Assembly (NCBI RefSeq): GCF_006345805.1
Contig: NC_043010.1
Coordinates: 25,048,001-25,112,000 of the forward strand
Source of the DNA: Octopus sinensis
Taxonomy: Eukaryota
Direction: 5' to 3'
DNA: 64,000 nucleotides
The position numbers and the translations under genes were made by a program. The notes below the pieces were generated by a model. It was not told where the DNA came from. It saw only the letters and a list, made by a program, of their open reading frames with translations, and made no database searches. Below, in pieces: positions 5,463 through 64,000 of this stretch. Within the stretch, counting starts at the first letter, position 1. Every line of letters begins with the position of its first letter.

Positions 5463-8400
5463 CAGTGGTTCCTAACCTTTTTCAGCTCAGGTACCATTTT
5501 TTACTTGAAAAAATTTGTATGGACCACTTCTACTTTTACTTTAAGCTGTTCTATTTTCACACTAAAATGCTTAATGGAAAGACAAAATAGTCTATTTACA
5601 CTTTAAAATTTATTTTAGCAAACAAAAGATAAAATTTAAAATTTATTTTAGTAAACAAAGATAAACACAAGATATCAAAATCATTTCTCATAAAGTCATT
5701 CATTTTTAGTCCATTCTGTTAGTGACTTGCTTGATATTGGTGTTTCTAACACAAGATATCATAATCAATTTTAATGAATTGCCCCTGGGAGCTCCTCTAT
5801 GCTGATGACCTGGCCCTCATAGCAGAATCACGACTGGAACTAGAAAAGAAATTTCGGGTGTGGAAGCAAGGTTTAGAATCAAAGGGCCTTAGAGTAAATG
5901 TAGCAAAGACCAAAGTAAGCAGAAAGGCGAACTCATCACACCCTGCTCGATCTGTAGGAAAGGTGTAGTTAGAAACTCCATAAGATGTACCCAGTGTAAG
6001 CTATGGACGCATAAGAGGTGCAGCAACATCAAAGGAAAATTAACTGATAAGACAGCTTTCATGTGCGGCAGATGCACAGGGACAATAGACACCACAGATA
6101 CTCAGAAAACTGATTCTATCACACTCCAGTGGGAGAAACTAGTAGTAGTTGATAGTTTCCACTACCTAGGTGACCAAGTTAGTAGTGGAGGTAGATGCTC
6201 AGTGAGTGTCACCACTAGAATACGAATAGCCTGGGCAAAGTTTAGAAAGCTCCTACCCCTACTGGTGACAAAGGGTCTCTCGCTCAGAATGAAAGGTAGA
6301 TTGTATGATGCATGTGTGCGAACTGCCATGCTTCACGGTAGTGAAACATGGGCTGTGACTGCAGAGGACATGTGTAGACTTGAAAGAAATGAAGCTAGCA
6401 TAATCCGCTGGTTGTGTAATGTCAGTGTGCACACACGACAGAGTGTAAGCACCCTGAGAGAAATGCTGGACATAAGAAGCATCAGATGTGGTGTGCAAGA
6501 GAGACGTTTGCGCTGGTATGGTCATGTACTGCGGATGGATGAGGATAGATGTATAAAGAAGTGCCACTCCCAAACAGTTGAAGGTATCAGGGGGAGAAGT
6601 AGACCCAGGAAGACATGGGATGAGGTGGTCGAGCATGTCCTCCAAACGTTAGGCCTCACAGAGGCAATGACGAAAGACTGAGATCTCTGGAGATATGCTG
6701 TGACTGCAAAGACCCGGGCTGCTTCCTGCACCAGTTTTGCATAGCCCCAGCCCATTCAAAGTACCTTGGATTGCAGAACGACCTGCTGTGCTTACCCTGG
6801 ATCGTAGAGTGACCTGCTGTGCTTGAGGAGACCTATTGAGTCAAATACATCAATATCAAATGGAAAATGTAGTTACGATACCTGGGCTGGCGGCATGTAA
6901 AAAGCACCATCCGAACATGGCCAATGCCAGCGCTGCCTTGACTGGCTTCTGTGCCGGTGGCACATGACCTGCTGTGCTTGTGGAGACCTATTGAGTCAAG
7001 TACATCAACATCGAAATAAATATCAAATGGAAATAGTAGTTGTGATAACTGTGCCGGTGGCACATAAAATGCACCATCTGAATGTGGCCGATGCCAGTGC
7101 CGCCTTGACTGGCTTCTGTGCCGGTGGCACGTAAAAAGCACCAACCGATCGTGGCCACTGCCAGCCTCCCCTGGCATGTAAAAAGCACCCACTACACTCA
7201 CGGAGTGGTTGGCGTTAGGAAGGGCATCCAGCTGTAGAAACACTGCCAGATCAGACTGGAGCCTGGTGCAGCCTCCTGGCTTCCCAGACCCCGGCTGAAC
7301 CGTCCAACCTGTGCTAGCACGGAAAATGGATGTTAAACGATGATGATGATTTAGTCTTAGTCTGATAGTTCCTCTGCTGTTGACATCTAATTTATTTCTT
7401 TTTCTACTTAAAATATCTACAACAGCTGAAAATGCAGATTCCACCAGCCATGTAGTAGGGAAAGAAATGATGCTTGCTTCTACCTGTCGAAAAATATTTA
7501 TCGATATGCAGCAAAGACACCTTCTTTTTCAACTCTTCTCAGTTTCATATTCTCTTTCAAATCTAACATTTCAGCCAACTCAAAATTTTCATCTCCTGGC
7601 TCATAATTTTCTAGGTCTACAAACCAGAGTGGATAATCAATCTTTAATAAATCATTGTATCTTCTCTCAAAGTCTACATGAAGACCATCAAGATGGGCCA
7701 ATTTTTTCTTCAAACTGTTTTTTCCAAAATTTTAATTTCACCATATACCCTTTTATCTTCTGAGAACTGGTGATCAAATCTGATTTTCTATCTTGCAGCT
7801 CTAAGTTAAGCAGATTCACTGTTTTAAAAATATCACTCAAGTAGAATATTTTTGATTTAAACTCAGAAAGTCTTTCCAAAATTTTCTTAGCTGTATCAGC
7901 TTGCTTCTTGGAGTTGTAATGAGTCATCTGACTCTTGACCATGAGAAAGTTAATTAATGGTTCCCACAAATTCACTAGTCTTTCAAGCCTCAGGCCTTTT
8001 GACAACCAATTTACTTCTGTGTGAAGCAATAGGGTTTTAAAATTTTCATCTTCACAGAATTGCATTTAAAATCTATTAGTCACTGAGTTTGATTTGACAA
8101 AGTTAATTGCATGTATGGCAGTGTTGAGTGCTTCTTCCATCTGTTCTCCAATATTCTTAGCAACCAAATGCTGTCTGTGGATAATGCAATGTGAGGAGCA
8201 ACTGATTTCATTTTAGAAACAAAGCCTTTCACTTTTCCAGTCATGGCTGCAGCTCCATCTGATGCAATGTTGATCAAATTAGTCAATGGAATATTTTTAT
8301 CATTAAAATACTGCATTACTTCATTGAATATATCTTCTTCATTAGTAGTTTCAGACAAACTTTTAATGAATAACATTTTTTCCCTTATATTATCTTCATG

Positions 8401-9295
8401 GATGAATTTGACACAGACCAGAAGGGTAGCTTGGTTATGAATTGTGCTATCATCAACCTGGATAGAAAAATTTGTTTTTTGGAGAATTTCTACAACCTTC
8501 TCAACAAAATTAGACTGAATTGTACTCATAGTAGATGTAGCATCTTTTCCCAGAACATCATTTGCACAAGCTAACATAGTAGGCTTGACAAGTTTCTCAC
8601 CATAAATCTGAGGTGCTGCAACTGTGATAATAATTTCAGAGACCAAATAACTTGATTTGAATGTCTTTGCTTTTTCAGTATTTATCTTCTTTACAAAGTC
8701 GAGTAGTTTGTTTGGCTGTATTTTCTTTTTATTCTCAAAATATTTCCTACTTTTACCAAAAGATGATGGACGCCTTAATTTCTAGTGCTGTTCCAGCTTA
8801 ACTTTCTTCATGGAATGATTTGTCATGATGGCATCACACTCAAGACACATAGGTTTTGAGTCTACAGATACAAAACCAAACATGATAAAATCTTCTTTGT
8901 AGTTCCTCAGTTTTGCATTTTTAGCAGTTGATTCAGACATTATTATAACTGATCTTAAATAAAAATAATAAGTACTTTATTTCTATAAATTAAAAGTATA
9001 AAATTTATTATTAAACAATATTGTGTAGTGATCTATCAAAAATATCAAATTTATTATGAAACTGATGTGATTGTAAAATTTAAATTATGTAATTGTTGAT
9101 TGCAATATATTATTGATTATATATTATACATTATTCTTCTTATTATTATTCTGTCTTCATACAAATTATTATTAACTAATAGTGTCTTTATTATCAAACA
9201 ATATTGTGTAGATCTGAAATGGTTTCAATTTTTTTATGGCTACAAATTCTGTGGGGACCACCGGTGGGTCCCAGGGACCATGTTGGGAGTCATTG
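5463..9295 (-). mobile_element. hAT (Buster/Charlie-like) DNA transposon with decayed transposase (~8940 to 5719), interrupted by an RTE LINE
   Basis: TIRs CAGTGGTTCCTAAC / CAATGACTCCCAAC (revcomp). Exact 8-bp TSD ATCTAATG at 5455-5462 and 9296-9303. FSIQVDDST, IASDGAAAMTG, LLLHTEVNWLSKG motifs. Confidence 0.92.
5779..7350 (+). mobile_element. 5'-truncated RTE-clade LINE nested in the hAT transposase C-terminus
   Basis: ELLYADDLAL, LYDACVRTAMLHGSETW, RPRKTW; (GAT)n tail. The hAT frame RLRL resumes as ...IKIDYDILC on the other side. Confidence 0.9.
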
Positions 9296-9973
9296 ATCTA
9301 ATGTATTCTAGGGTGTGATTTGACTGCTATATAGATTGCAGATAGTAACCTCAGTAATTACTTCGGGTTATGACAGCTCTGCCTATCACAAGTTCCTCAC
9401 TCAGCTGATTCTGGTTGACTATTCAGAATGAACTCTTGTCCAAGTAACAGATCACTTCTCAACTTTGAAATTTCATGTTAGTATCTAGAGAGGTATGTTG
9501 TGCCTTCTGGAGGAAAGGTGCTTCTTTAGCCCTTACAGAAACTCGTTTAGTGTTAGCGTGATGATAAAAACGCTGCTTTTTCAGTGATCTTCAGTTCTCA
9601 GGCCTCTTTACTCTTTATGAGACCAACATGAGCTCTATTTCCAATTGGGATATCAGAGTTACTTCCCTTTAGGAGGAAGGACAAATTAACAAAGAAGTGG
9701 GTGATACATTGCCAATTGGATTAATAATGAATCCATAATTACAATAGTTTATGTACAGAACAGAAATTAGTATTAGTAGCCATATAGATCATTGAATAAC
9801 CACTTACACTAGCTCAAGAATGACCTGGCAATTTTGATCATTATAGCCACAAATACTATGATATTGGGAATATCTACTTGCTACTGAAAACAGAATCAGA
9901 TAATGTTTATCTGATTGACAGTTAAACAATATTTTTTTTTAATGCCATGTATTCATTGCAAATATATTTCTAG

Positions 9974-10061
9974 GCCAGTTCACCTGCCAACATTGTAGAA
10001 AATCTGGTTTGTGGGAGCAGCTTCAAGAAAATCTAAACAACATATTTAACAAGAAAAAAAG
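9974..10061 (+). CDS. TWNK: Twinkle coding exon 2 (GQFTCQHCRKSGLWEQLQENL...)
   Basis: tttctag acceptor, GTATGA donor. Phase 1 in and phase 2 out join both neighbours. Aligns to human GHFLCMTSLAEGSWEDFQ. Confidence 0.9.
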
Positions 10062-10959
10062 GTATGATGATCATGTGATCAAATCAGTTCTGATCAAGTA
10101 GATCTATAACCAAAAATGTTCCAGTCATAATTATCCTATCTTATTTTTAGTCATTCTATTAAGGACCACATTATGCAGTGATGCCTTCTTTTCTGTCAGA
10201 TGTTATGGTGTGGAATGATGGGAATGTAGCTGATATTTCTAGCAGGTTGAGCAAATACATAGAGACTTTCTTTCATGTGTGTAGCATGTTTTTTTCATTA
10301 AAATTTTGTTATGGCATGAACAGGATAAGATGGACATTAGTTAATGATTAATATTCACTTTTCTCTTCTAGCAAGGGTTGAATGAATCTGATTAAAAATG
10401 GTGACTCACCACATGTCACAATCTTTTGTTACCCGACTTCAGCGTCTTTAGGTCAAAGTTCACCATACCTTCCTTTCCTACAGGCTCCTATTATTTGCAC
10501 TGTTTGACATTTCAATTACCTATCATCTTTCATACTAATGTAACCTCCTCCTTTCCACACTACAGTTAATGTCAGCAATACCCAGTTTTTCTCTCAAAAC
10601 AGACATTGGGGCTCAACTCAGACCTCTGGCTCATCAGATCCTCTCAAACCATTCAATGCATGCCAACATGGAAGACGTGATGAGAATGATATGTAACATG
10701 ATTATAATTTTCCAAATTGTTTACTATGTTTTGATCTTAGTTGAGAAGCCCTCATTTTGGTTAAGAAGAAAGTGTAGTTTTCAACTTGAAATTTATCTGA
10801 ATTTCTGTAAGATTAGACAGTACAGAACATATCCGCAAATTAGTGGTCATACTTTACAATTGCTATTGTGGGTGAGAAGTGTGTACAGATGGCTAATGAT
10901 ATGCTTGCACTTTGTGATTCTGAGAAGAAATAGGTATCAAAGAAGGCAAGTCTTCTTAA

Positions 10960-11200
10960 TATGGACTCAACTGAGGAACTAGCTGCCAGAGTTGAAAGCA
11001 ATATGATACATAAGGCACTTAAGGATATGAAGACAAGGAAAGTCCCTAGTCCATCAGGAATTACTATTGCAATGCTTAAAATATCTGGCAGAGTAGGATG
11101 TAGTCTAGTTAATCAGGTTATTCAGGAAGGTGTCATCCCCAATGACTGGTGGAACAGCATTATAGTGAGTTGTTACAAGAGTAAAGGAGGTGCATTCCTG
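10960..11200 (+). mobile_element. RTE LINE fragment (pre-RT region)
   Basis: KALKDMKTRKVPSPSGIT...IQEGVIPNDWWNSIIVSCYKSKG. Confidence 0.75.
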
Positions 11201-31860: not shown

Positions 31861-31964
31861 GTTATTGTTATGGGTATTAAGGGTATTAGTTATATGAATT
31901 ATTATTGTTGTTGTTGTTGCTATTGCTGTTGTTGTTGTTCTTGATGGTGATGATGCAGCAAGCT

Positions 31965-32175
31965 GGCAGAATCATTAGCATGCAAGGCAAAATTCCTAGT
32001 GGCATTTCATCTATCTTTACATTCTGAATTCAAATTCTGCTGAGGTTGACTTTGCCATTCATCCTTTTGGTGGTGGTGGGGGTTTCAATAAAACAAATAC
32101 CAGTTGAGGACTGGAGTCAAGGTAATTGACTTATCCACTCTCCAGAATTACTGGCCTTGTGCCAAAATCTGAAAT
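31965..32175 (+). mobile_element. Old SINE of the 'GGCGGCGAGCTGGCAGAA' family with tail B
   Basis: Head, TTTGCC(T/A)TTCATCCTTT core, GGCCTTGTGCC tail. Related internally deleted copy at 33983-34150. Confidence 0.7.
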
Positions 32176-33950: not shown

Positions 33951-34364
33951 GACAGTTATCATTGAGATTATTATTATTATTTAAGGCAGCAAGCTGGCAG
34001 AATCATTAGCACATTGGGTGAAATGCTTAGCAGTATTTTGCCTGTCATCCTTTCAGGGTCAATTAAATAAGTACCAGTTACACACTGGGGTGAGGTAATC
34101 AATCCCTTCCCACAAATTTCAGGCATTGTGCCTACAGTAGAAAGGTTTATTATTATTCATATACACTCAACAGATTAGATTGTTGGAAAAGAAAAGTTTC
34201 TAACAAGTAACCTTAGATGCCAAAAACCCTCCTAAGTATCCCAGCTGTCCCTAATAACACTGTTTTCTAGAGCTGTACTAAATTGGGTTTTATGCCTATT
34301 TCCTCTAGCCATCTGTTCAAATCTTTAGGGATAGTTCCTAATGCACCTATAAATACACGATATA

Positions 34365-44841: not shown

Positions 44842-45300
44842 TAATCGACTGGTCTCCTCCCCCAAAATTTTGGGCTTTGTGCCTAAAGTAGAAAAGAACA
44901 TCTTTCTCTACTCCAGGGACAAGGCCCGAAATTTTGGGGGAGGGGGTAAGTCGATTGGTTCGACCCTAGTACGCAACTGGTACTTAATTTATCGACCTCG
45001 AAAGGATGAAAGGCAAAGTCGACCTTGGCGGAATTTGAACTCAGAACGTAGCGGCAGACGAAATACCTATTTGTTTACTACCCACAAGTGGCTAAACACA
45101 GAGGGGACAAACAAGGACAGACAAATGGATTAAGCCGAGTACATCGACCCCAATGCATAACTGGTACTTAATTTATTGACCCCGAAAGGATGAAAGGCAA
45201 AGTCGACCTTGGCGGAATTTGAACACAGAACGTAACGAAAGACGAAATATGGCTACGCATTTTGCCCGGCGTGCTAACGTTTCTGCCAGATCGCCGCCTT
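44842..45300 (-). mobile_element. Compound SINE: head + tail-A unit + tail-B unit, abutting an inverted tail-B fragment
   Basis: Read on the minus strand: head 45300-45250; junction ...AAACAAATAG|GTATTTCGTCTGCCG at ~45068; tail B ...GGCCTTGTCCCTGGAGTAGAGAAAGA. Confidence 0.85.
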
Positions 45301-45344
45301 CTGTTTACTTAACATTATACGATAAAATGCGTCGAGCATGCTTT

Positions 45345-45530
45345 ACGTTAGCATGCTTTACGTTCTGAGTTCAAATTCTGCCGTGGTCGACTTTGACTTT
45401 CATCCTTTTGGGATCGATTAAATAATTGCCAGTTACGCACTGTGATAGATGTAATCGACTTAATCCCTTTGTCTGTCCTTGTTTGTCCCCTTTATGTTTA
45501 GCCCCTTGTGGGCAATAAAGAAGTAAGAAA
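45345..45530 (+). mobile_element. Headless tail-A SINE unit
   Basis: GAGTTCAAATTC B-box, CTTTCATCCTTT core, tail TATGTTTAGCCCCTTGTGGGCAATAAAGAAG. Confidence 0.8.
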
Positions 45531-45995
45531 CATAAACCCACAGGTCAGCAATACTCGGGCACTGGACGACTGGGAGAGAAATGCCTGCCATCGCCTAATT
45601 CATACACCCTCTATGTTTCAACATTTATCTTAACACATCCTTCCACAAATGCAGGGTTCAAAATTCACATAAATAATATAATAACATAAAAGATTTTTGT
45701 ACTCACCCAGATGTGGCAAAAAAATTATATTAAAACTGACAAGCAAAAAGTTCTGGCAAATTCTTGGCGCATAAAATAAATCCATAAATGTGTAATACAA
45801 AGTATATATGCTAAATAAGCTTCCAGAATCCAGTTGAACAGAAGAGAGAAAAAAAAGAAACCGAGTGAATGAATTAGCTCTGCTTATAAAGGTTTGCTAA
45901 GGTCTAGCCAATTTGTTAGTTTGCCTATTAACACCTGGCTTCCCCCATTTTCACAATGGACTTCTTCCTGATTTTACTTAACATTCTTTTCTACT

Positions 45996-46060
45996 GAGGC
46001 GGCGAGCTGGCAGAACCGTTAGCACGCCGGGCGAAATGCATAGCCGTATTTCGTCTGTCG
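45996..46060 (+). mobile_element. SINE tRNA-like head (5' half of the Tx1 target)
   Basis: GAGGCGGCGAGCTGGCAGAACCGTTAGCACGCCGGGCGAAATGCATAGCCGTATTTCGTCTGTCG. Confidence 0.9.
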
Positions 46061-49000
46061 CACATGTGTTCGTGGTAAAAATTGCTGTTTCTTGGTGTTA
46101 ATATTGTTAATAACTGCTGTTTCTAATAACTGTTGTTTCTTGTTAAACTGTTGAATAACTTAACTGTTGGAGTTTTCATTTGAAAACTCTTAGTGCTTGT
46201 AGTAGCACGCGTTGTTCATTCCCTCTTTGGGGGAAAAAATGTCATCTAGCAAGGAGCCTACCGTTGGAGCAGAAATATTTGTTTCTCCTGTTGAGAGGAG
46301 GAAGTATATGTCCGGCGAGGAGCCAACTACAGACAGGGAAATAAGGGTTTCCCCCGCTACAAGAAGGAATAGCAGAATAGATAATATATTTGATTTTTTT
46401 GGAGATGTGTCTGAAAGCTCGTCAGAACTTTCACCAGAAGAGTTTCCGACTTTGCCAGAGAACAAGGGCATTGTGTCGAAAAGAATGATTGATGTACCTA
46501 GCATCCAGACAGAACCAAAAAATGGGGGAAAAAAAGTTTTGCGTTGGCAGCTGCGGGTGAAACCCGGCTGCTTTCGACGAATAAGAGCGACTTTATGAAA
46601 TACAGCCAAATGATGAAAATAACTGACAACGTTGTGAAAATTGAACCTCCAGAAAAGTTACTACAAGAAGAAAAACAAAAAAACAATAATTTTCAAAACA
46701 TATTGTTTACAAAAAAGAAAAATTGAAAGAATGTCAGAAGAGAAAATAAAAAAGTGCTTATGGGGCGATGTAGTTTATCTGAGAAGAGGCAAGAAATTCA
46801 GAACGGTGGAAGTAAGGTTCACCAATAAAGAAATAGCACAAAAGAACTCAGTAGAAACGCTGAAAACGAACGACGTGGAGCTCATTCCCACCTCTATGGG
46901 GATGAGAACGTCCAGATTAAAACTTACAAGGGTTCCACCAGAAGTGGGAGAGAAATGCCTGCCATTGCCTAATGGTTGTTGGCGGCAGTCCTAATCAAAG
47001 AGGAAGAGAAAATTACTCTCTTCCAGGCTACCGAAAACGCACATTGGGATGGTAAAACAATTAATCTCCTCATTCAAGCGGACCCTAAAATAATTCAAGC
47101 AATTCCCGAGACAATTGAGGTAGGGGAGGAGAACCTCGTGGTGTTTGTTGAAGGCCGAAAACCTCGATGTTTTTTATGTGGTCAATTAGGCCACATTCGA
47201 AGGAACTGCAAGGAAAATGAGGAAGAGGAGAAAAAAGACAAAGAGAAAGAAGAAAAAGATGAGAAAAAAAACAAACAAAAGGAAAATACAACCAGCAACT
47301 CAACCGAGAGTGGTGACTACTACAGAACAATGACCAAAAAAGACTGCCAGAAGAGAAAAAGAAGAAAAAGGTATAATAGCCGTATACACTAAAGATACTG
47401 AGCTAATGAGAGACATTCAACAGATAAAGACTGTAAAAAAATAGATAACCTCTCAGAGGAATTTATCAATTACGACGTATATGAAGTCTCAAATAAGACT
47501 CATAGAATTTTACAAAACAAATACAGAAAGACTATCTTCATTGAGATTAGATTTTAACAAGTCGATATTTCATGGATTGCCAGCCCCGATCCCGCGAGAA
47601 AAGGAAAGGGTGGAGACTCCCCCTCCACCTGATAATTCTGTGTCAGTGGTGAGACGGGATTTTGACAAATCTATTTCCCAAGACCGTCCACTTCCGACCC
47701 TGGATCAAAAAAAGGTTGAGGGTCCCCCTCCTCCGGACAATCCTGATTAAACAAGTAAGTCATGTCTATTCACATTGGTTGTATAAATGTTCGTGGCCTG
47801 ATGTCAAGCTGGAAGCAAGGACACTTTCTAAATGACATCAGGTCGAGAAATTTGGATGTAATTGTTGCAACGGAAACCCGGGTGAAGGGGCCAAGAGATC
47901 TGCTGCCCCTCCTGAACAGCTATGAGAAATACGTTTCTCCGAGTCGGGTGGGGGTGGGGTGTTGGTCCTACTAAAAAGAAACCGGGTAGCCGAGAAAAAG
48001 TTGGTTTTTTCTGACCCAGAAGGCAGGCTGGTCGTTCTCGACCTGACATTCAGTTGTGGAAAGACAATCAGGCTGGTCGCTATTTACGCACCAAACATTA
48101 TTGGCCCGCAAACTGAATATTTTCCTGACCTGGGAAAGCTCCTAGCCACTTCGCATTCACTAGTACTGTTAGGAGACTTTAAACAATATGTGCAGCACAC
48201 ACAGATTGTGTTGGCTCAAGCTCGAACATGAACAGAAAATGTATCCCAGGCTTTCGTGATCTGCTAAGTCAGTTTCAGCTAGCAGATCCACAGTGGACGT
48301 GGTCAAATAGTGACAGATCTACCAGAACATATTTAGATAGGATTTTAATTAGAGAAAAAGATAAGTCCATATTTGAGTGTCCACAGTTTTTTCTAGTCAG
48401 CTAGTGACCACAAGATAGTTACCTGTAAACTGATGGTAGATAAGTTGCATGGATAGGGATCTGGCTACTGGAAATTCAATACGTCCCTTTTGGCGATTGA
48501 GGAGTACAGAAAGCGGATCAAGATGTTAATACAGAGGGCATTAATAGGTACCATCATTAATAACAAATGGTGGTACGCCCTAAAAAGAGCCATCAAATAT
48601 GAGTCTATTAGGTTTAGCAAAAGTTTAGCTAAGAAGGGACGTAGAATAGGAGATGGTCTAGTTAAGGAACTAGAAGAAGCCTGGAGGACTGGTAATGCAG
48701 ACCAAGCGAGGGTGAAAAGACTGGAGTTAAACCAGCATCTTGAAGCCCAACACATGGGAAGTATTGGCAGAGCTAAGTTACATGCAATGGGAAGTGAAGG
48801 AATCAAGGCCGCTGGATGGGCCCGAGTGGTGGAAGCTCGGCAAGGAAATAGTTCCTATATTCGGTCTTTGACGAATCAGAATGGTGTCTTGGTAAACAAA
48901 CCCGAGAAAATGTGTGCGGTCTTTCGGGAGTACTTCGCCCAGCTGTTCGGGGATGACGGCGGTCCTGGTGGTGGGAGAGCCCTCGAGGACTTTCTTGCCG

Positions 49001-51319
49001 GGCTGCCGTGCCTCTCGGGGTCGGATGCGGAGTCTTGCGAAGGGCCAATCACGCCTGAGGAGGTGATGGAGGCTTTGACTGATTACAATCAGCGGGTAAG
49101 TCGCCGGGACTTGATGGTCTTCCGTACGGGCTGTATGCCAGACTTGTTCGGAAAACTACTGACTGACGTGTACGCGAACTGGAAATAGAATGGGTTTATC
49201 CCCAGATTTTTGTGTGCCGGGGAGTAGTCAGACGTTGGTCAGAAAGGACCCGGGCAAGGGGGACGTTCTAGAAAATTTCAGGCCCATCACTCTGGTAAAC
49301 ACAGAAGTGAAGATTTTGGCCAAGGTTCTAGCAAAAAGGTTGGCGCGTGTCGCGAATGGTATAGTCGGGGAGGCACAGACATGTGCCATCCCCGGCAGAA
49401 CCATTCAGGATACCCTCCATCTTATTCACTATACCATAGAGAGGGTTGGTAATAAATCTGGCAAAGGTGGGGCATTGGTGCATTTGGACCAGTCTAAAGC
49501 TTTTGATAGGGTTGACCATCGATACCTAGCGACTGTGCTTGCGCAGTTTGGCCTGGGTCTTGGCTTCCTTAAGTGGTTTATCGCTTTGAACCACAACATT
49601 GACTTGATAGTTCAGGTGAACGGTTTCCTTTCGAAGCCGTTCTGCATTAGACGCTCGGTTCGTCAAGGATGTCCGTTTTCACCACTTTTGTATGTGATGG
49701 CTCTCAAGCCATTACTGCGAAGGTTGAGTGGTATCCCGAGAGAACCAGGACTAGAGGAGTTTATTACGGCTTTCGCAGATGATATCACTATCAGCGTAAC
49801 CACAGTAGCACGCCTGCGTGAAGTAGGTAAGACTACTGAGGTTTACGAAGATGTAGCAGCAGCAAAGATTAACCGGGAAAAGTCGGTCGGCTAGCAGCTC
49901 GGCACCTGGGTTGGCAAGTCGATGCCTTCAGATAGCGTTGTTGGGCGCTGGACGGAGGGACCGGTTAAGTTGCTGGGAGTCTGGTTTGGACCAGGCCTCC
50001 AGATAGAGAAGAACTGGACGGAGGTATTGAGCAGGGTGGCTGCAGTAGTCAAGACTTGGTCTTGGCGGTGGCTATCCCTGAAAGGGAGGGCAGAGGTGGC
50101 CAATGTGTTTATTGCATCGGTCATTACCTACCTCCTGACTGTTTTGCCCTGTCCGGATTCGTGGTTGATCAGGTTGGAGAGACAGCTCTTTCGCTTTTTG
50201 TGGAAGGGCAGGTCGCCACTTGTGAAACACTCTGTCTGCTGTCAAAAGCCTTTAAAGGGAGGTTTAGGGATGCCTTGGTTAATGATGCGCAGACATGATG
50301 CGTTGAGGTTGAGGCACCTCTGGATTCTCCTGGATAGTGAATGGGTGTGGTCTCTGCTGGCCAGACAAATGTTCCCTGAGTTCAAGAGTTTTTGCGAACA
50401 GGAAGCCTGGTGTTCTCATAGACCGAGGTCGAGTGAGTGGCGTTCCGGCGCTCGGGCAATGCCAGCGGTGGGGGTTCCACACGGATTTTATATAGTGGGT
50501 TGGTAGAGTTTGAATGCGACGATGGCCTGGGGTCGACTCTAGGTCTCGGATTTATTCAACTGGACAGCCTGTTTCATCGTACATTCGGGTTGAGAACGTT
50601 GGACAACTTCCAAAAGTCCTTAACCTGGCAATGCTACAGAGGTGCCTTGCCCGTTTGGGATAAGCTCGCAAGACATGGTAAACGTCAGTCGCAGACCTGT
50701 CCAAGATGTGGGGGGGGGGGCAGGGAAACCGTCCCTCACGCTATTGTTCAGTGTCCGGAGATAACTGAAATGTGGGATTATGCTGAACACCTGCTGTCCG
50801 GCGAAGGAAGAGTACAGCTGTCGACTGAGTCAATTATAAAAATTGATCCACCGGGAGTTCTAATGAACGAAGGTAAGAATTGTTTTCTCACGGTTGTAGC
50901 AATAGCAAAAGAGGCAGTATGGAAGACTAGGATAAAAGGAATTAAGACAGGCAACTTTATCTCTGGTCACAATTTACGATCTTTTTTTCTTTTCATTTGA
51001 AAAGGAAACTGCGGCTGGAGAAGAGGTGTCTGTCGGAGTGTACGTTCCAAAAGAGATGGAAGCCTGTTGCACGAGTGTTGTGCGTGCAGAGAACCGTGTG
51101 AATAGACGGGAAAAAAAGGTATCAGCAGTAGATCGGGGCTTGTGGGGTCGGAGCGTAACCTGATCATCGCTTCATTTGTATTGTGTATTCCATTCGATTT
51201 TTTATGTATTGTATTTTATTTTTAAAGTCACATTTATGTAAAATCATATCGCTTCACTGATCCGATCAGTTGTACTGTCCATATCTATGTTTGGCCCCCG
51301 GTGGGCAATAAAGAAATTT
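46061..51319 (+). mobile_element. Apparently full-length Tx1/L1-clade LINE: ORF1 (~46212-47392, CCHC knuckle) and ORF2 (47762-~51101, APE + RT + CCHC), disrupted by frameshifts and stops
   Basis: CFLCGQLGHIRRNC; CINVRGL, ATETR, IYAPN, LLGDF; LDQSKAFDRVDH, QGCPFSPLLY, FADDI; CPRC...ETVPH...C. 15-bp TSD 46046-46060 / 51320-51334 (14/15 identical). Confidence 0.93.
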
Positions 51320-51856
51320 GTATTTCGTCTGCCGTTACATTCACAGTTCAAATTCCGCCGAGGTTGACTTTGCCTTTCATCCTTTCGAGGTCGATAAATC
51401 AAGTATCAGTTACGCACTGGCGTTGATATAATCGACCTAATCCGTTTGCCTGTCCTTGTTTAGCCACTTGTGGGTAGTAAAGAAACAGGTATTTCGTCTG
51501 CCGCTACATTCTGAGTTCAAATTCAGCCGAGGTCGACTTTACCTTTCATCCTTTCGGAGTCGATTAAACAAGTACCACTTACGCACTGGGGTCGATGCAA
51601 TCGACTTAATCCGTTTGTCTGTCCTGTTTTGTCCTCTCTGTGTTTAACCCCTTGTGGGTAGTAAACAAGTAGGTATTTCGTCTGCCCCTACGTTCTGAGT
51701 TCAAATTCCGCCGAGGTCGACTTTACCTTTCATCCTTTTGGGGGTCGATTAAGTAAATACCAGTTACGCACTGGGTTGATATAATCGACTCAATCCGTTT
51801 GTCTGTCCTTATTTGTCCCCTCTGTGTTTAGCCCCTTGTGGGTAGTAAACAAATAG
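51320..51856 (+). repeat. Tandem array of three headless tail-A SINE units (169, 184, 184 bp)
   Basis: Units start at 51320, 51489 and 51673, each with GTATTTCGTCTGCC. Confidence 0.92.
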
Positions 51857-52653
51857 GGGATCTTTTCCTTTTGAACGGCACTTTGTAACATAATTTCTAG
51901 GTAACTAAAAAGTTTTAAACTTCGTATACTGGTAGAATGTGTTTATAAAACATCATTTTCTCTTGGCTTTATTGAGAAAATTCTATAGTTTGTAAGATAT
52001 TTCATCTGAAATTTCTTGCATTTCGGCAATTTTAACCAATCAATTACCTCCATTGACGTAAATAACATTCTGTGCATAATGAATATGTCCCTCCTTTAAG
52101 AAACAGATTGGGTTTATTTACATTTGTGAAGAAAAAAGATACCCTTTCCCCCACCCCTAACCCTAAATCTAAAATAGATTGAAATGCAATAGATCGATAC
52201 TAGGGTTATAATTATGGGTGACATTTTCATTTGACACCGCTAGAAAAAAATCCCATTTTCCATAGCGGTGTCGTATGAAATTGTCACCCATAATTATAAC
52301 CCTAGTATCGATCTATTGCATTTCAATCTATTTTAGAGTTAGGGTTAGTTAGGGGTTGGAGAAGGGTATCTTTTTTTCTTCACAAATGTAAATAAACCCA
52401 ATCTGTTTCTTAAAGGAGGGACATATTCATTATGCACAGAATGTTATTTACGTCAATGGAAGTAATTGATTGGTTAAAATTGCCGAAATGCAAGAAATTT
52501 TAGACGGAATATGTTACAACCTATAGAATTTTCTCAACAAAGCCAAGAGAAAATGATGTTTTATAAACACATTCTACCAGTATACGAAGTTTAAAACTTT
52601 TTAGTTACCTAGAAATTATGTTACAAAGTGCCGTTCAAAAGGAAAAAGATCCC
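51857..52653. mobile_element. Near-complete ~800-bp palindromic MITE (TIR GGGATCTTTTCCTTTTGAACGGCAC)
   Basis: Arms pair almost to the centre (~52250); TAACCCTAA / TTAGGGTTA inside the arms; same TIR family as 43157-44225. Confidence 0.9.
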
Positions 52654-52914
52654 ATACATACATACACACATGACGCAGCTTGCGTATGTGTTTATATGTG
52701 TGTGTGTGTTTGTATACGTGTGTGCGTAGAGTTAATATAAACATCTGCGTGTACATATGCGTATATATTGATGTGTGTCTGACTTTTTTCAACTTTTTTC
52801 TATTGTTTTCAAACTGTCTTCACCCTTTTTCTTCTTTCGTTGTTTTCCTGTTGTCTCTCCTTTTTCCTGCTTCGCCACCACCCACCTTTACCAGTTTGCC
52901 ACCACCTCTCATCA

Positions 52915-55756
52915 TGCCTGACTTGCACTCGTTCGTCCAACACCTTCAATCCCTCCTCAGCCGCTACCTCGCGTTCTTCCCCCCACAATGTTCCGCACCT
53001 GCTATAAAACTTTCCCGCTTGCTTTTTAAGAAAACCCGCCACTCTAGTCATCTTTCCTTTCTTAGCCGGTGCCTCCGCCATCATGTCACACCCCGCGGTT
53101 TCCTCTTGAAGTTCCACGCTACCCCCTATTCCTCCCCCTTCATCGAACCCACCCTCGCTCGGACCTCCCGCTCCCTCCTCCGCGCCACCATCCGCTCCAC
53201 CCGCCCCCTCCTTGACTCCCTCGACCATCAACTTCCCCAGGCCTACCTCCTTCTCTCCGCCCTCTGCCCTCCACTCTTCACCCAACCTATCCTCCGCTTC
53301 ATTCTTAATCTCAACCACCAACTCTACAACCACCTCACACACACAAAAAACAAAAAACTCCACCTCCTCCTCAACCCCTCACCCCCTTCCCCATCCTCCC
53401 CCACTGTTCCCCCCCTCCTTCGCACCTACCCCACCCTTCCACGGACCCCCCCCCACCGTGACCTTCCTACGCCTAACCCATCTTCACCCAACCACCCCTA
53501 CCCTCCCCTTCACACCCCTGCACCCCCTCCGCCTGCCCCTAGTCCTCCCACCACCCCGCTTCCTCGCGCTGTTGTCACTATACCCCCCCCCCTCCCCCTC
53601 TCCGCCGCTGAGCGTTCCCTCCTCAGTAGAGGTCTCCGCTTCACGCCACTCACGCGCCACTGTGATGAGTTCGAGACTCGGGCGGACGTCAACCTGTTCC
53701 TGCGCCGCCTCAAACTTCGCGCATACTACCACGCGTCCCCGCAGCGTCAAAACAATCAGGATTGCCTTTTGGAGCTGGGGCGTCGTCCATCCATCTGGAC
53801 GCCGCCCCCAGGCCTTTTCAGTAGCCTAGATTCGTTTGTACATGACTGCAACGCTTTGGTCCACCGTTTCAACTTTGAACCAAGACCCCGCCGAGCCAAC
53901 CTCACTCGGGCCGAATCCATTGCCCTTCGCCACCTCCGCCGTCGTGATGACATTGTCATCAAACCGGCGGACAAAGGCGGGGCAGTGGTAGTGTGGCGCG
54001 CGGACCTATACAGGGAGGAAGCGCTCAACCAGCTTCAAAATCCACTCTTCTATCGCCTCCTCCCCTCCGATCCCACCTCCTCCTACCAACAACGAGTGTC
54101 CTCCACCATCCACGACCTCATCTCCTCCTCCGCTCTCCCCCTCACCGCCACCAACCTCATCGTCCGCACACCCCGCACCTCCACCATCTACTTCCTTCCC
54201 AAGATCCATAAACCCTCTAATCCTGGCCGTCCCATAGTCTCTGCCTGTAATTGCCCCACTGAACTCATCTCCCTATACCTCGACCGCATCCTGTCCCCCT
54301 TAGTCGCAGCCCTCCCATCCCACATACACGACACCAACCACGCCCTCCGTCTCTTCAATTCCTTTTCCTTCCCTTCCAGCCCCTCACACCTCCTCTTCAC
54401 TTTAGATGTAAAATCCCTGTACACAGTGATTCCCCACAATGACGGTCTCCTAGCCCTCCAACACTTCCTCGACCGTCGTCCCGACCCCACCCCCAGCACC
54501 CCCACCTTCTCCGTTTGGCCGAGCTCGTCCTCACCCTCAATTGCTTCACGTTCGCCGGGGAAACGTACCAACAGGTGTCCGGGGTCGCGATGGGAACTAG
54601 GATGGGCCCCAATTTCGCCAGTCTCTTCTTGGCTACATTGAGGCCCAAGTGTTCTCCCAGTTCTCTGGGCCGACCCCCGAACTATACGGTCGCTATATCG
54701 ACGACTGCGTAGGTGCCACCTCCCTTTCCCGTGAACTTCTCTGCCAATTCATCTCTTTCCTTTCCAACTTTCACCCCTCCCTTCAATTCACCTCCACCAT
54801 CTCCAACACCTCTGTCAACTTCCTTGACATCTCTCTCCGCATCGATCACCCCTCCAGATCTCTCACCACCACCGCCTTTTTTAAACCTACGGATTCCCAC
54901 CTCTATCTCAACTTCTCTTCCTCCCACCCCTTCCACACCAAACGAGCCATCCCCTACTCCCAGTTCCTCCGCCTCCGACGTTTGTGCAGCCGCGACCAGG
55001 ATTTCGAGACCCAATCTCAATACCTGGCCCGCATGTTCAGACTCCGAGGTTACCCACCCATACTCCTCTCTGATGCCCTCACCCGCGCCCGTCGCATCGA
55101 CCGCACTACCGCCCTGTCTCCTCCCCCCGCCCACCCCCAACCGCACCCCCTTCCCCCTCCTTTTCCACCCCTCTACCCTACCCCTTCGTCGCAAGATACT
55201 ACGTGCCTTCCGTCGCCTCCAGCTTGATCCCACCACCCGCCCCATTTTCCCTAACCTACCCCTGTCCTCTTTCAAACGAGCCCGCAATCTGCGTGACCTC
55301 CTGGTCCACAGCACCCTCTCTCCTTCCCCCTCAGCCCCACACGGATCATTCCCTTGCTCTAGATCCCGCTGCAACACTTGCCCCTTCATCACCAACACCA
55401 CCGCTGTCACCGGCTCCAACCTGCACACTGTACGCATTAGGCACTCTTTTACGTGCACCTCGTCTGGCCTTATTTACTGCATTAAATGCAACCTATGCGG
55501 GATGCTGTATGTAGGACAGACGGGACGCCGGTTGTCCGACCGTTTCACTGAGCACTTAAGGGACGTTCGCCTACACTCTCTTTCTCCCGTCGCACGCCAC
55601 TTCCGTTCGGCCGGCCATTCCCTAGATGACATCTCAGTGTTTGGTCTCGCCCCCCACCAAGGTCGCCCACTTTCCAGGCTCCACTTGGAGCAACGCTACA
55701 TCTTCACCCTACAAACTACCACCCCACACGGACTTAACACAGCCCCCTCCTCTTGA
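52915..55756 (+). mobile_element. Penelope-like element, Neptune-type ORF (RT + Zn-finger linker + C-terminal GIY-YIG), ~3 frameshifts
   Basis: IVIKPADKGGAVVVW, YFLPKIHK...GRPIVS, TLDVKSLYTVIP, GVAMGTRMGPNFA, YGRYIDDC, CSRSRCNTC, GLIYCIKCNLCGMLYVGQTGRRLSDRFTEH; stop TGA at 55754-55756. Confidence 0.93.
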
Positions 55757-55789: not shown

Positions 55790-58560
55790 ACCACCCACAC
55801 ACACACACCCACCTGCCTCCCACACGCACACACCCACCCACCTACCTCCCACACACACCCAACCACCTACCTCCCACACGCCTGTTCACACACACACATA
55901 CGCAGACCCATTTACGTACATACATTCACACATTTAATCACACACACTTACAGACATACTAGCACACACTAACATACAAACCAACATGCACATACACACA
56001 CACATACATACATACGCACACACATACATACTTACACACACACACACACACAGACATACATACACACATACACACACACATACATACGCACATACATACA
56101 CACACACTCACACACACACACACCGCACGTACATACTTCACACACACACATGCAAACATACATGTAGGCACATACATACATACATGCCCACACATGCACA
56201 CCCTTACACTGAATGCACACACACATACACCTTTTTGCATCCAGGCAGCCCCCCCTCTTTTCTGCTTTCCGGTTTTGGCTGATGGATCCTCGGTTCCCGC
56301 GTAGCGGGGCGTTCGAGGGCCTTTGCGCTCGCGCGCCTTGGCGCGCGCTGGGGGCTTGGTCGGCCCCTTGGGCTTGCGTTGTACTGCTTGTGCGTTGTGT
56401 GCGTGAGCGCGCTTTGTGCGTGTGGGCTTGCTTCGGATGTGCGCGTACGTATGTATGCATACATACCCACACACTCGCATGCATCCCTACCCACATACAT
56501 ACACGCACACCTACTCACACACACACATACACACACATACCTGCACACACACACACATACATACATACACATACATACCTACTTCAGACATACACACACA
56601 CAGACATACACCCATACACTCACACTCACACGCATACACACACACACATACACACGCACACGTACACATACACACACACACACACACCTACATACATACA
56701 TTACACTTGTATACACACACACTTACATTCATACACACACACACCTACACAGCCATACCCTCACTCAGACACACACATCTACCTACACACACACACAAAC
56801 ACACACGGACACACACCCATACATACATACATCTACACACACACGCCTACACACATACATACACACATACATAAACACACACACATACACATATACACAC
56901 ATACGCACACACACATATACTTATACACATGCACACACACACATACATACATACACCCATATACATACATACACACATACCCACATACTCCTATACGCAC
57001 ATACATACACAAAGACATACACACTTACACACTCACACAAACATACACACACACATACTTACACACACACTCACCTGCACGCGCACACACATGCATGACA
57101 AACACCCATACACTCACACTCACATACGCACACACCAACATAAACACGCACACGCACACACACACCTACACTCCCACACACATACACACGCACCTACATA
57201 CACACACGCACGCATACACACGCACACACACATACATTACACACGTACACACACACCCACATACACATGCATACACACACACACAAACATGCACGGACAC
57301 ACCCAGACATACACACATACACCTATATACACACGCCCACACACCTACATACACACACATATACACACGCCCACACACCTACATACACACACATACATAC
57401 ACACACATACACGGACACACCCACACATACTTACATACATACACCTATACACACACGCCTACACACCTACATACACACACATGCATACACACACACACAC
57501 ATGTACGCACATACACACACATATACGCACATACATATATACCCACACACATGCACACACACACACACATACGCACATGCATGCATGCATGCACACGCGC
57601 ACACCTACACGCATACACACACACACGCACGTACACATACATACATACACACACGCATACATACACCCATACACATACATGCATCTGACACACACATACA
57701 TACACACTCACACATACATACACACACACACTCACTCACACACCTGTATGTACGCGCACACACATGCACATACACACACTTCCCCACACCCACACGTACA
57801 TACATACACACTCACACACATACACACACAACACACGGACATACATCTATGCACACACATACATACACACATACTCACATACATTCATCGCACACACTGC
57901 CACCCAGACATACACACAGACACACTCACACATCCACACACATACATACGTACGCGCATACTCGCAGGCACGCGCACATACGCACTTACGCCGGCTCGCG
58001 CTGCATACGCGTCGCATACACCTCGCCCTTGGACCTGACGAGACCTCCCGCCCGTTCCTGGGACCGTCGCGTGTCGTTGGGTTTTCCCACGCCTGTCTCC
58101 GCGGTACCACTCTTCCATCTTCCCCTCAGCTGGAGTCCTTTTTCCTTAACCCCCCCCCTTTTTTTCGTTACACACACGCGCACACATATACACACCTTGC
58201 CTATATATATACATCACTCTTACACACATTCAATCTACTCGCCATTAATACCACCACGACACTGGACACACACACACACTACTACTCAACACACGCTGGC
58301 ACGCTACATACGCCCCCACCCCTTCCCCTCCCTCCCTTCCTCCTTCCTTCTTTTTCTTACTACTGACCTCCCTTCCTCCTTCCTTCTTTTTCTTAGTACT
58401 GACCTCGTCTGCTAGCTGACCACTAGTCTCGCCCTACCTCACACGCCTACACACAGACGCACACACTAACACACACATATATTTTTTTGTTTTTTCATCT
58501 CGCCTCACACACACACACACACACACGCACATGCACACACTCACACATACACACACATCT
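55790..58560. repeat. Long complex (CA/CATA)n microsatellite field with two GC-rich islands
   Basis: Directly visible; produces spurious HT-rich ORFs. Confidence 0.9.
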
Positions 58561-62971: not shown

Positions 62972-64000
62972 TGAAAGGAAGCAACAGAAAGTAACAACTA
63001 CACTCTTACCCGCGCGTAGAGCGGGTCACCTTCAACTAGTATATATATATATATTCATTTTTTTTTTATGTAGTATGAATGGTGAAAAGAGTACAACAGA
63101 ACAAGGAAGGAATGGAATGCAATTGGGTCTTACCTAGCTGGAGATGAACTTGGATCGCCTTTAGCCAACTCGCTCGTGTCGTGTCTTCGTCGTGTCTGAG
63201 TCAACTGCTCGATGCCGCACGTGCGTTCTGCCTGTCACTTCCGCTTCCGCCGGCACATGCGCCCTGCAAACCCTGCAAGCCCCACTTCCGCTCTCCCCAT
63301 CCGTCACACTCCCTCACCATCACAACACACGCCCCCCTGATCTATAGATCACTGAACCGGCTTCCTCACTCGCTCCCGCACCTGAAACTGGTTTCATAAT
63401 CAGCCAACCAGGGAGGAGGGTGCCGCTCCCTCTGTGGTCGCAGTGCGACCCTATGACTTGTTTCTGGTGTGTTGCTGCCGACCTCGTCATCCTGTCTGTT
63501 GTTTTCGTCTTGCCCACTGCTGCTTGTCCCATCCTCTGGGGCATGGACAATCCTCCATATGTCCAAAACGTGGCGTGGCATACCATCGACCGAGATGTTA
63601 TTCTTTGAATTTACGGAGGTTATTGTCCCCTTTCCCCATTGCGATGTATACCGTGCGTTTGGGGGTTTTACCCAGACTTCCTCCCCGACCTGCACGAAGG
63701 CGTGCTCTTCCTCTGCCCCGGGTCGCATTGACGTAGTACACGGATGCCTCCACTCGTACCTGAATATTGCCCTGTGTGGCACCGACTCCTCAGCCTGTCC
63801 TGATCTGGGCGATATATTGTACCAAAACACGGCCTCGACTGGTGAAATGTGACCCCTCTCTGCCATGGCCTTGATGGTACGATGATGCCTTTCCACCACC
63901 CCGTTTCCACTTAGCCGGTATGCCGCCCTGAAGAAGCGGTTGACCTTCCACTCATCAAGCATTTCTCTCAGCACATCCGAGCGAAACGCAGTGCCGTTGT
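62972..64000 (-). mobile_element. Gypsy/Ty3 LTR retrotransposon 3' end: integrase, PPT and 3' LTR (~62972-63327)
   Basis: NGTAFRS...SGNGVVERHHRTIK...YNISP; stop at 63366; G-rich PPT (TCAGGGGGGCG) before TGTTGTGA; LTR bounded by TG...CA. Confidence 0.85.

Follow-up and report, generated by a model that had tools for sequence, protein, structure and literature searches.

In a 64-kb window of Octopus sinensis DNA, the whole stretch that was analysed, three headless SINE units are stacked directly behind a LINE, and the junctions between these elements all fall on the same nucleotide of the SINE sequence. The LINE is enclosed by a 12-bp target-site duplication and its 3' tail is homologous to that of the units. 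A second array nearby joins units with two different tails at the same position, and neighbouring units show no extra similarity to one another. The best available reading of this arrangement, strengthened by the mixed tails of the second array, is one of stacking by successive insertions. It is, on balance, probable that target-primed reverse transcription inserts the LINE and the SINE sharing its tail at one position within the SINE, where the head together with a 12-mer would prime the second strand. The evidence comes from two arrays 700 bp apart in the window and from one LINE copy at the site.

Array 1, on the plus strand, consists of a SINE head, a 12-mer, the LINE and three direct headless units. 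The head (45998-46045, 48 bp), identified by direct reading and BLAST, has the sequence GGCGGCGAGCTGGCAGAA...GCATAGCC, contains the A-box-like motif TGGCAGAACCG and was 98% identical to positions 1-61 of a head-plus-unit query. It is followed by the upstream copy of the target-site duplication, GTATTTCGTCTG (46046-46057, 12 bp), the LINE (46058-51319) and the downstream copy of GTATTTCGTCTG (51320-51331), which forms the first bases of the first unit, u1; the duplication is perfect. The original prediction had described three units of 169, 184 and 184 bp, each starting at the same nucleotide as the duplication of the LINE and ending in tail A, and BLAST, nhmmer and direct reading confirmed them at the same coordinates: u1 at 51320-51488 (169 bp, with a 15-bp deletion), u2 at 51489-51672 (184 bp) and the distal unit u3 at 51673-51856 (184 bp, headless in the present sequence), all on the plus strand. 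The B-box-like motif GTTCAAATTCC is present in all three, and their 3' ends read ...GTGGGTAGTAAA(G/C)AA(A/G)(C/T)AG, tail A being written here as ...TGTTTAGCCCCTTGTGGGTAGTAAACAAATAG. Tandem Repeats Finder reported the array twice, at 51301-51814 with a period of 169 (score 628) and at 51457-51857 with a period of 184 (score 639). The head, noted in the original prediction as never duplicated, indeed occurs once in array 1, upstream of the LINE; a BLAST search of the window gave just four stretches of head-like sequence (at 45998, 45298 on the minus strand, 31955 and 33985). The LINE now parts the B box of the array from its head, with a gap of 5.3 kb between the A and B boxes. When a target-site duplication was sought around array 1 as a whole, only a non-adjacent TCTTTTC match was found, which was rejected as uninformative, the 3' flank being a foldback element.

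The distance from the GGG motif to the junction is equal in the LINE tail and in the SINE tails, so that the 3' junction of the LINE and the three unit junctions lie on the same nucleotide. Taken over both arrays, four 3' junctions share one common nucleotide (those between the LINE and u1, u1 and u2, u2 and u3, and A1 and A2, the two units of array 2). The repeated insertion at one site that had been proposed agrees with this, the LINE, u1, u2 and A1 all having the same junction nucleotide. The unit starts, likewise expected to be uniform, are so: u1, u2 and u3 (3/3) as well as A2 begin with the exact 14-mer GTATTTCGTCTGCC, and A1 starts at the same position with mutated bases. Under random truncation over the 233-nt SINE, the chance of three units hitting the junction nucleotide of the LINE would be of the order of 1e-7. 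The 14-nt target is also intact at the internal junctions of array 1, which implies that insertion need not always take place beside the head.

The LINE (46058-51319, plus strand, 5262 bp) is degenerate and apparently full-length. Its ORF2 has decayed into seven or more fragments, which marks the copy as old. Pfam searches identified the CCHC knuckle of ORF1 (zf-CCHC, 2.4e-5), the reverse transcriptase (RVT_1, 2.4e-26) and a C-terminal zinc finger (zf-RVT, 1.1e-7). The AP-endonuclease survives as decayed remnants that can be read by their motifs, albeit with a Pfam Exo_endo_phos score of only E=0.049, a weakness due to the degradation of this copy. When the reverse transcriptase was compared with solved structures, human L1 ORF2p was nearest (4.5e-20), followed by R2 (1.2e-13), a result that would place the LINE in the L1/Tx1 group and no finer. 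The combination of AP-endonuclease, reverse transcriptase, C-terminal zinc finger and ORF1 knuckle fits the Tx1 clade, but it is shared by L1 and is not diagnostic. L1-Tx1 LINEs have been recently active in Octopus vulgaris (PMC13282606), and the Tx1 label for this LINE is plausible.

Homologues of the reverse transcriptase shared at most 60% amino acid identity with it, and those of the C-terminal part were found at an Octopus sinensis chromosome locus and on short Logan contigs. Three related LINE copies, from O. sinensis and from cephalopod-like reads, were recovered at 66-73% nucleotide identity, and their 3' ends lie in other sequences: L003 (O. sinensis CM016876.1, 68%) ends inside a 31-bp satellite, L006 (a Logan contig, 72%) and L004 (66%) in unrelated sequence. 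None of the three has a unit behind it, and by BLAST the SINE of the array was absent from another LINE relative (L002, 50% identity). The tail-A SINE copies u3, C and L009 also have 3' ends without the target after them. With one LINE copy and three SINE junctions at the site, the sequences point at best to a preference for it rather than to strict site specificity. In L003, the LINE relative is 5'-truncated and lies at 8057-9216 and 9668-11070 among degenerate copies of the 31-bp satellite (AGATGTTCCATCACAGTTGTCACCAGTCTTC, 37.6 copies just upstream), with a short ATTGGAT repeat at both junctions. This copy is possibly a further LINE of the group with repeats as its target; as a single case, its position inside a satellite would be in keeping with a tendency of the group to insert into repeats.

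The 3' tail of the LINE (51265-51319, plus strand) is homologous to tail A of the SINE and contains a small GCCC/GGGY hairpin of four pairs, one of which is covarying. In an alignment, the homology extends over ~45-50 nt and comprises three LINE lineages (this LINE, L003 and L006) and six SINE copies, with 17 invariant columns. An nhmmer model of the unit matched the three LINE tails with E-values of 1.1e-4 (this LINE, model positions 121-182), 7.3e-6 and 6.2e-5. It follows that the SINE to which the units belong makes use of the 3' recognition tail of this LINE group. Other copies of the SINE are not stacked. Copy C (45356-45527, plus strand) carries tail A, has an aberrant or truncated 5' end, does not sit on the target and served as an unlinked comparison copy. 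A protein search with a 73-aa peptide spanning the consensus unit junction gave a single match, a full-length tail-A SINE monomer with its head (L009). Two copies with heads at 31955-32136 and 33985-34150, identified by BLAST and sequence reading, carry a different tail, B, as does a copy of the same SINE family at the O. sinensis chromosome locus of L003. The unstacked copies are either full length or truncated elsewhere (C, the L003 copy and the L009 monomer), which makes the exact start point specific to the stacked units. In the two tail-B copies of the window, the 12-mer is degenerate and unoccupied, and (ATT)n/(GTT)n tracts flank these copies on both sides, which suggests that the dispersed tail-B subfamily has a different partner LINE with microsatellite-type tails. 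Of a tRNA relationship only the A-box-like and B-box-like motifs can be read: ARAGORN found no tRNA in the window, and Rfam gave no tRNA match over 44850-46100 at the gathering score or at E<=10. The SINE head may nevertheless be an old tRNA derivative.

Array 2 lies on the minus strand, 700 bp upstream of array 1, in the order head, A1, A2. Positions 1-233 of the head-plus-unit query matched 45298-45067 with 87% identity (BLAST). The head (45251-45298, 48 bp) is directly followed by A1 (45067-45250, 184 bp), which ends in tail A and has its first bases mutated to ATATTTCGTCTTTC. Directly after the tail A of A1, the headless unit A2 (44897-45066, its 3' limit being approximate) begins with an exact GTATTTCGTCTGCC and ends in tail B (CCCCCTCCCCCAAAATTTCGGGCC...). 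The junction between A1 and A2 is at the same nucleotide as the junctions of array 1. Body identity is 84.7% between A1 and A2, as compared to 86.3% between A2 and u2 of the other array, so that here, too, neighbours are no closer. Judged from its two tails, array 2 is the product that would be expected if a tail-A element inserts into a resident tail-B SINE, and one that local duplication could not yield. Behind the tail-B end of A2 lies a partial tail B in inverted orientation, with which it forms a long hairpin (44852-44946). A microRNA in this segment was considered and rejected: the matches to several Rfam precursor models were below threshold, the best reaching 33 bits where the gathering score is 245, and are a structural artefact of the two SINE tails.

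The units of array 1 differ by substitutions and an indel, as had been noted, with pairwise identities of 86.4% for u1-u2, 87.5% for u1-u3 and 90.2% for u2-u3 and the 15-bp deletion in u1. Compared with the unlinked A1, u1, u2 and u3 have identities of 85.2-87.4%, and the units of array 1 appear no closer to one another than to this unlinked copy. Four-taxon site patterns among six copies are nearly star-like: u2 and u3 have one site to themselves, and the non-adjacent pair u1 and u3 has two. The remaining similarities of u2 and u3 are states also present in copies C, E or A2 and are subfamily markers. The expectation that adjacent units would not be each other's closest relatives thus held for u1 and u2, and it is clear from these comparisons that u1 did not arise recently as a copy of u2. 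It held less well for u2 and u3, which are, barely, nearest neighbours in the six-copy sample. An early duplication of this pair is conceivable; at the age of the units (~7-9% from the consensus) and with the LINE heavily degraded, it is difficult to distinguish independent insertion from early duplication. A polar array with the newest insertion nearest to the head, which had also been predicted, did not emerge: divergence from the six-copy consensus, a poor one with small counts, is 8.3% for u1, 8.7% for u2 and 6.5% for u3, the distal unit being the least diverged if anything, which is too slight a basis to refute the prediction.

In the proposed mechanism, the target would be one position inside copies of the same SINE family, between the A-box head and the B box. 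A LINE of the L1/Tx1 group, of the stringent type, and a SINE with a borrowed tail A of ~50 nt would share this preferred target, presumably by way of the specificity of the LINE endonuclease. As a 12-bp duplication is the standard mark of staggered nicks, the bottom strand would be cut immediately 5' of GTATTTCGTCTG, with a second nick in the top strand 12 nt downstream. Reverse transcription primed at the bottom-strand nick would make the incoming tail abut GTATTTCGTCTG, and the 3' end of the cut top strand would read head plus GTATTTCGTCTG. With LINE RNA as the template, the outcome would be an ordinary 12-bp target-site duplication. With SINE RNA, the cDNA would be complementary to the head and the 12-mer, to which the resident strand could anneal and prime second-strand synthesis from the 12-mer onward. 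Since the resident top strand would end in exactly the sequence to which the cDNA is complementary, the head would never be duplicated. The product would be the resident head, the new unit and the old unit, without a second head, and repetition of the process would build head-(unit)n. At internal junctions, the 12-mer alone would suffice for annealing. Non-terminal units would have to carry tail A, and the terminal unit could be any SINE of the family (with tail A in array 1 and tail B in array 2). In the presumed order of insertion, u3 would be the body of the original resident SINE. Each SINE insertion would re-pair the A box of the old head with the B box of the new unit, and the LINE insertion would part the two boxes.

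For the step in which the 5' end is resolved by homology to the upstream head, the precedent invoked in the original prediction is documented: R2 template RNA with upstream 28S sequence gives a cDNA that anneals to the target, leading to uniform 5' junctions (Eickbush et al. 2013, PMC3774820). The corresponding annealing at the octopus site would be expected by analogy. As in R2, the start of the second strand would be precise and the upstream sequence is not duplicated. R2 differs in that it has a restriction-like endonuclease, a 5' end defined by a ribozyme and a target in 28S rDNA, whereas the LINE described here belongs to an AP-endonuclease group and the homology would come from the head of the SINE, since what is targeted is a further copy of that SINE.

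Four other explanations were weighed against stacking by successive insertions. The first, which is unlikely, is that a pre-formed head-(unit)n multimer was retrotransposed as a block and that the LINE was inserted later, the stacking having occurred once, elsewhere, in a master copy. The route by which this would happen, also an improbable one, is read-through of the units by RNA polymerase III followed by initiation of the LINE reverse transcriptase at the distal tail A. The consensus unit has no TTTT run, so that polymerase III should read through the arrays and multimers could be copied as blocks. Every unit ends in a complete recognition tail, and the near-equal divergence of the units from the consensus looks as if they had arrived together. 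A block copy nevertheless needs a stacking mechanism for the first multimer, and the different composition of array 2, with tail A and tail B, requires at least two such origins; moreover, no convincing target-site duplication surrounds the whole of array 1, the 3' flank of which is a foldback element.

Local tandem duplication is distinctly improbable as the source of the arrays. Here, unequal crossing-over or slippage would have multiplied the segment from GTATTTCGTCTG to the tail in one SINE, and the LINE would lie beside the head by coincidence or preference. Arrays derived from SINEs occur commonly in molluscs and reptiles (PMC11481361), and u2 and u3, at 90.2% identity, are the nearest neighbours among the six copies. 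Recombination has been proposed for the TSD1-(SINE)n-TSD1 arrays of the blood clam (Nicolini et al. 2024, PMC11481361; citing Vassetzky et al. 2023). In such SINE-satellite arrays, the first mollusc SINE unit has a complete tRNA-like head and is followed by head-truncated units, as in the octopus. The units of the bivalve arrays, however, are truncated in the tail as well as in the head and are highly similar, whereas in the window the tails are complete, the units are 10-14% apart, one array mixes tails and a LINE sits at the same junction. Neither near-identical units nor cuts at both ends nor arbitrary breakpoints, the features of an array of the recombination type, were found. In two separate arrays the repeat boundary is both the natural 3' terminus of the SINE and the nucleotide of LINE insertion, and local duplication does not account for the joining of different tails in array 2. 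In addition, u1 resembles u2 no more than it resembles u3 or A1, and u2 and u3 have just one site that they alone share.

It is very unlikely that the units were acquired by 3' transduction, with a LINE transcript reading into the downstream unit and priming at its tail A, LINE and unit or units then moving together and each landing in a SINE adding a unit behind the LINE. Units with valid recognition tails do lie directly behind the LINE, and a read-through RNA would end in target sequence and could, by inference from R1/R2 biology, guide priming by annealing. Array 2, however, was stacked without a LINE, and the three related LINE copies lack a unit. Template jumping from end to end is a known property of non-LTR reverse transcriptases, and a single event with serial jumps, in which the enzyme halts at a fixed point of the tRNA-like head (headless RNAs being predicted to start at GUAUUUCG) set by structure, modification or RNA cleavage and then moves on to another SINE or LINE RNA at its 3' tail, would yield units of equal age from different source genes, as observed; such an event, and a halt point of this kind, are the least probable of all. 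The 12-bp sequence on both sides of the LINE marks staggered DNA nicks and not an RNA breakpoint, and the identity of the unit start with the first base of the duplication would stay unexplained. Block copying, 3' transduction and template jumping are possible accounts of array 1, but in each of them either a first stacking event has to be assumed or the 12-bp duplication goes unaccounted for.

The closest known counterpart of stacking by successive insertions is found in crocodilians, in which tandem SINEU-3 copies at the target of the LINE Tx1-Mar have been explained by "sequential insertion" (Kojima 2015, PMC4494074). In both systems, a SINE and its partner LINE, of the Tx1 type in the crocodilians, share one preferred target, and the copies are separated by a target-site duplication, of 16 bp in the crocodilians and 12 bp here. 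In the crocodilians, however, the target is part of an unrelated DNA transposon, Mariner-N4_AMi, with insertions that sandwich a duplication, whereas the octopus target is in the promoter region of the SINE family itself, and the stacked copies, without a 48-bp head of their own, have a single head in common. A SINE and a LINE at the same site with the duplication between copies are thus common to both; complete stacked elements and a foreign target are not found in the octopus. Target-specific LINEs of the Tx1 clade include Tx1L in Tx1D, Keno in U2 snRNA genes and Kibi/Koshi in microsatellites (PMC4494074). The octopus LINE resembles these in its AP-endonuclease, its C-terminal zinc finger, its position at a defined site of a multicopy sequence and its long target-site duplication; it differs in that a SINE head is not among the targets given in that paper and in that the related cephalopod copies are not at the site. 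Searches of the literature retrieved no paper on this SINE sequence and none describing self-targeted headless SINE stacks. What would be new is the joining of site-specific LINE/SINE stacking to homology-guided 5' ends, each part of which is already known.

Further arrays were sought with patterns for the tail-target junction and tolerant patterns for the SINE core in metagenomes, and in scans of viral contigs and prokaryote genomes; none was found in these collections, which hold almost no cephalopod DNA. As a tentative generalization, the SINE may carry the preferred site of its partner LINE between its A and B boxes, so that incoming cDNAs would join behind a resident head, headless units would take over its promoter and arrays would grow directionally. 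SINEs make up 11.6% of the O. vulgaris genome (PMC13282606); if the process is general, part of the octopus SINE fraction would stem from self-nesting and not from dispersal, and the order of units in an array would be a readable insertion clock. If it holds genome-wide, the SINE would be a landing pad for its own LINE machinery and, in an AP-endonuclease LINE system, a natural instance of 5' ends joined by homology, for which R2 has until now supplied most of the documentation. Recombination would then not be needed to explain one class of tandem SINE arrays, which would follow a compositional rule, with the tail of the partner LINE on the inner units and any tail on the last one. Such arrays would be ordered records of insertion that could serve for dating and as phylogenetic markers in cephalopods. 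In annotation, stacked units without heads are readily mistaken for satellites or random 5' truncations.

The window as a whole is rich in transposons, and the only named protein relative found was an uncharacterised Octopus sinensis protein. One base after array 1 starts a near-perfect foldback of 798 bp (51857-52654), whose last bases, ...AAAAGATCCC, precede a (CATA)n tract. It is made up of two pairs of arms, 51863-52161/52348-52646 (95% complementary) and 52157-52249/52256-52348 (92%), and any target-site duplication that the resident SINE may have had is hidden by it. Between the two arrays, a 13-bp direct repeat, TTTACTTAACATT (45306-45318 and 45971-45983), surrounds copy C and ~450 bp of other sequence; without the segment between these repeats, the arrays would sit head to head ~32 bp apart. 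Within the same segment, 44 bp downstream of the tail of copy C, 45571-45599 is identical in 28/29 nt to 46945-46973 in the ORF1 region of the LINE (E about 1e-8). Reverse-transcriptase ORFs of a different LINE (RVT_1, 2.8e-16) are present at 1848-2869 and 6061-6681. Downstream of the foldback, the plus strand of 52680-55756 contains long ORFs of 653, 192 and 347 aa that gave no Pfam match, the last with a GIY-YIG-like LIYCIKCNLCGMLYVGQTGRRLSDRFTEH; they may belong to a Penelope-like element. A degenerate (CA)n/(CACA)n-type microsatellite of ~2 kb at 55790-58000 gives rise to spurious long His-Thr-rich ORFs, and an integrase-like ORF that had no Pfam match lies at the end of the window (63366-63974).
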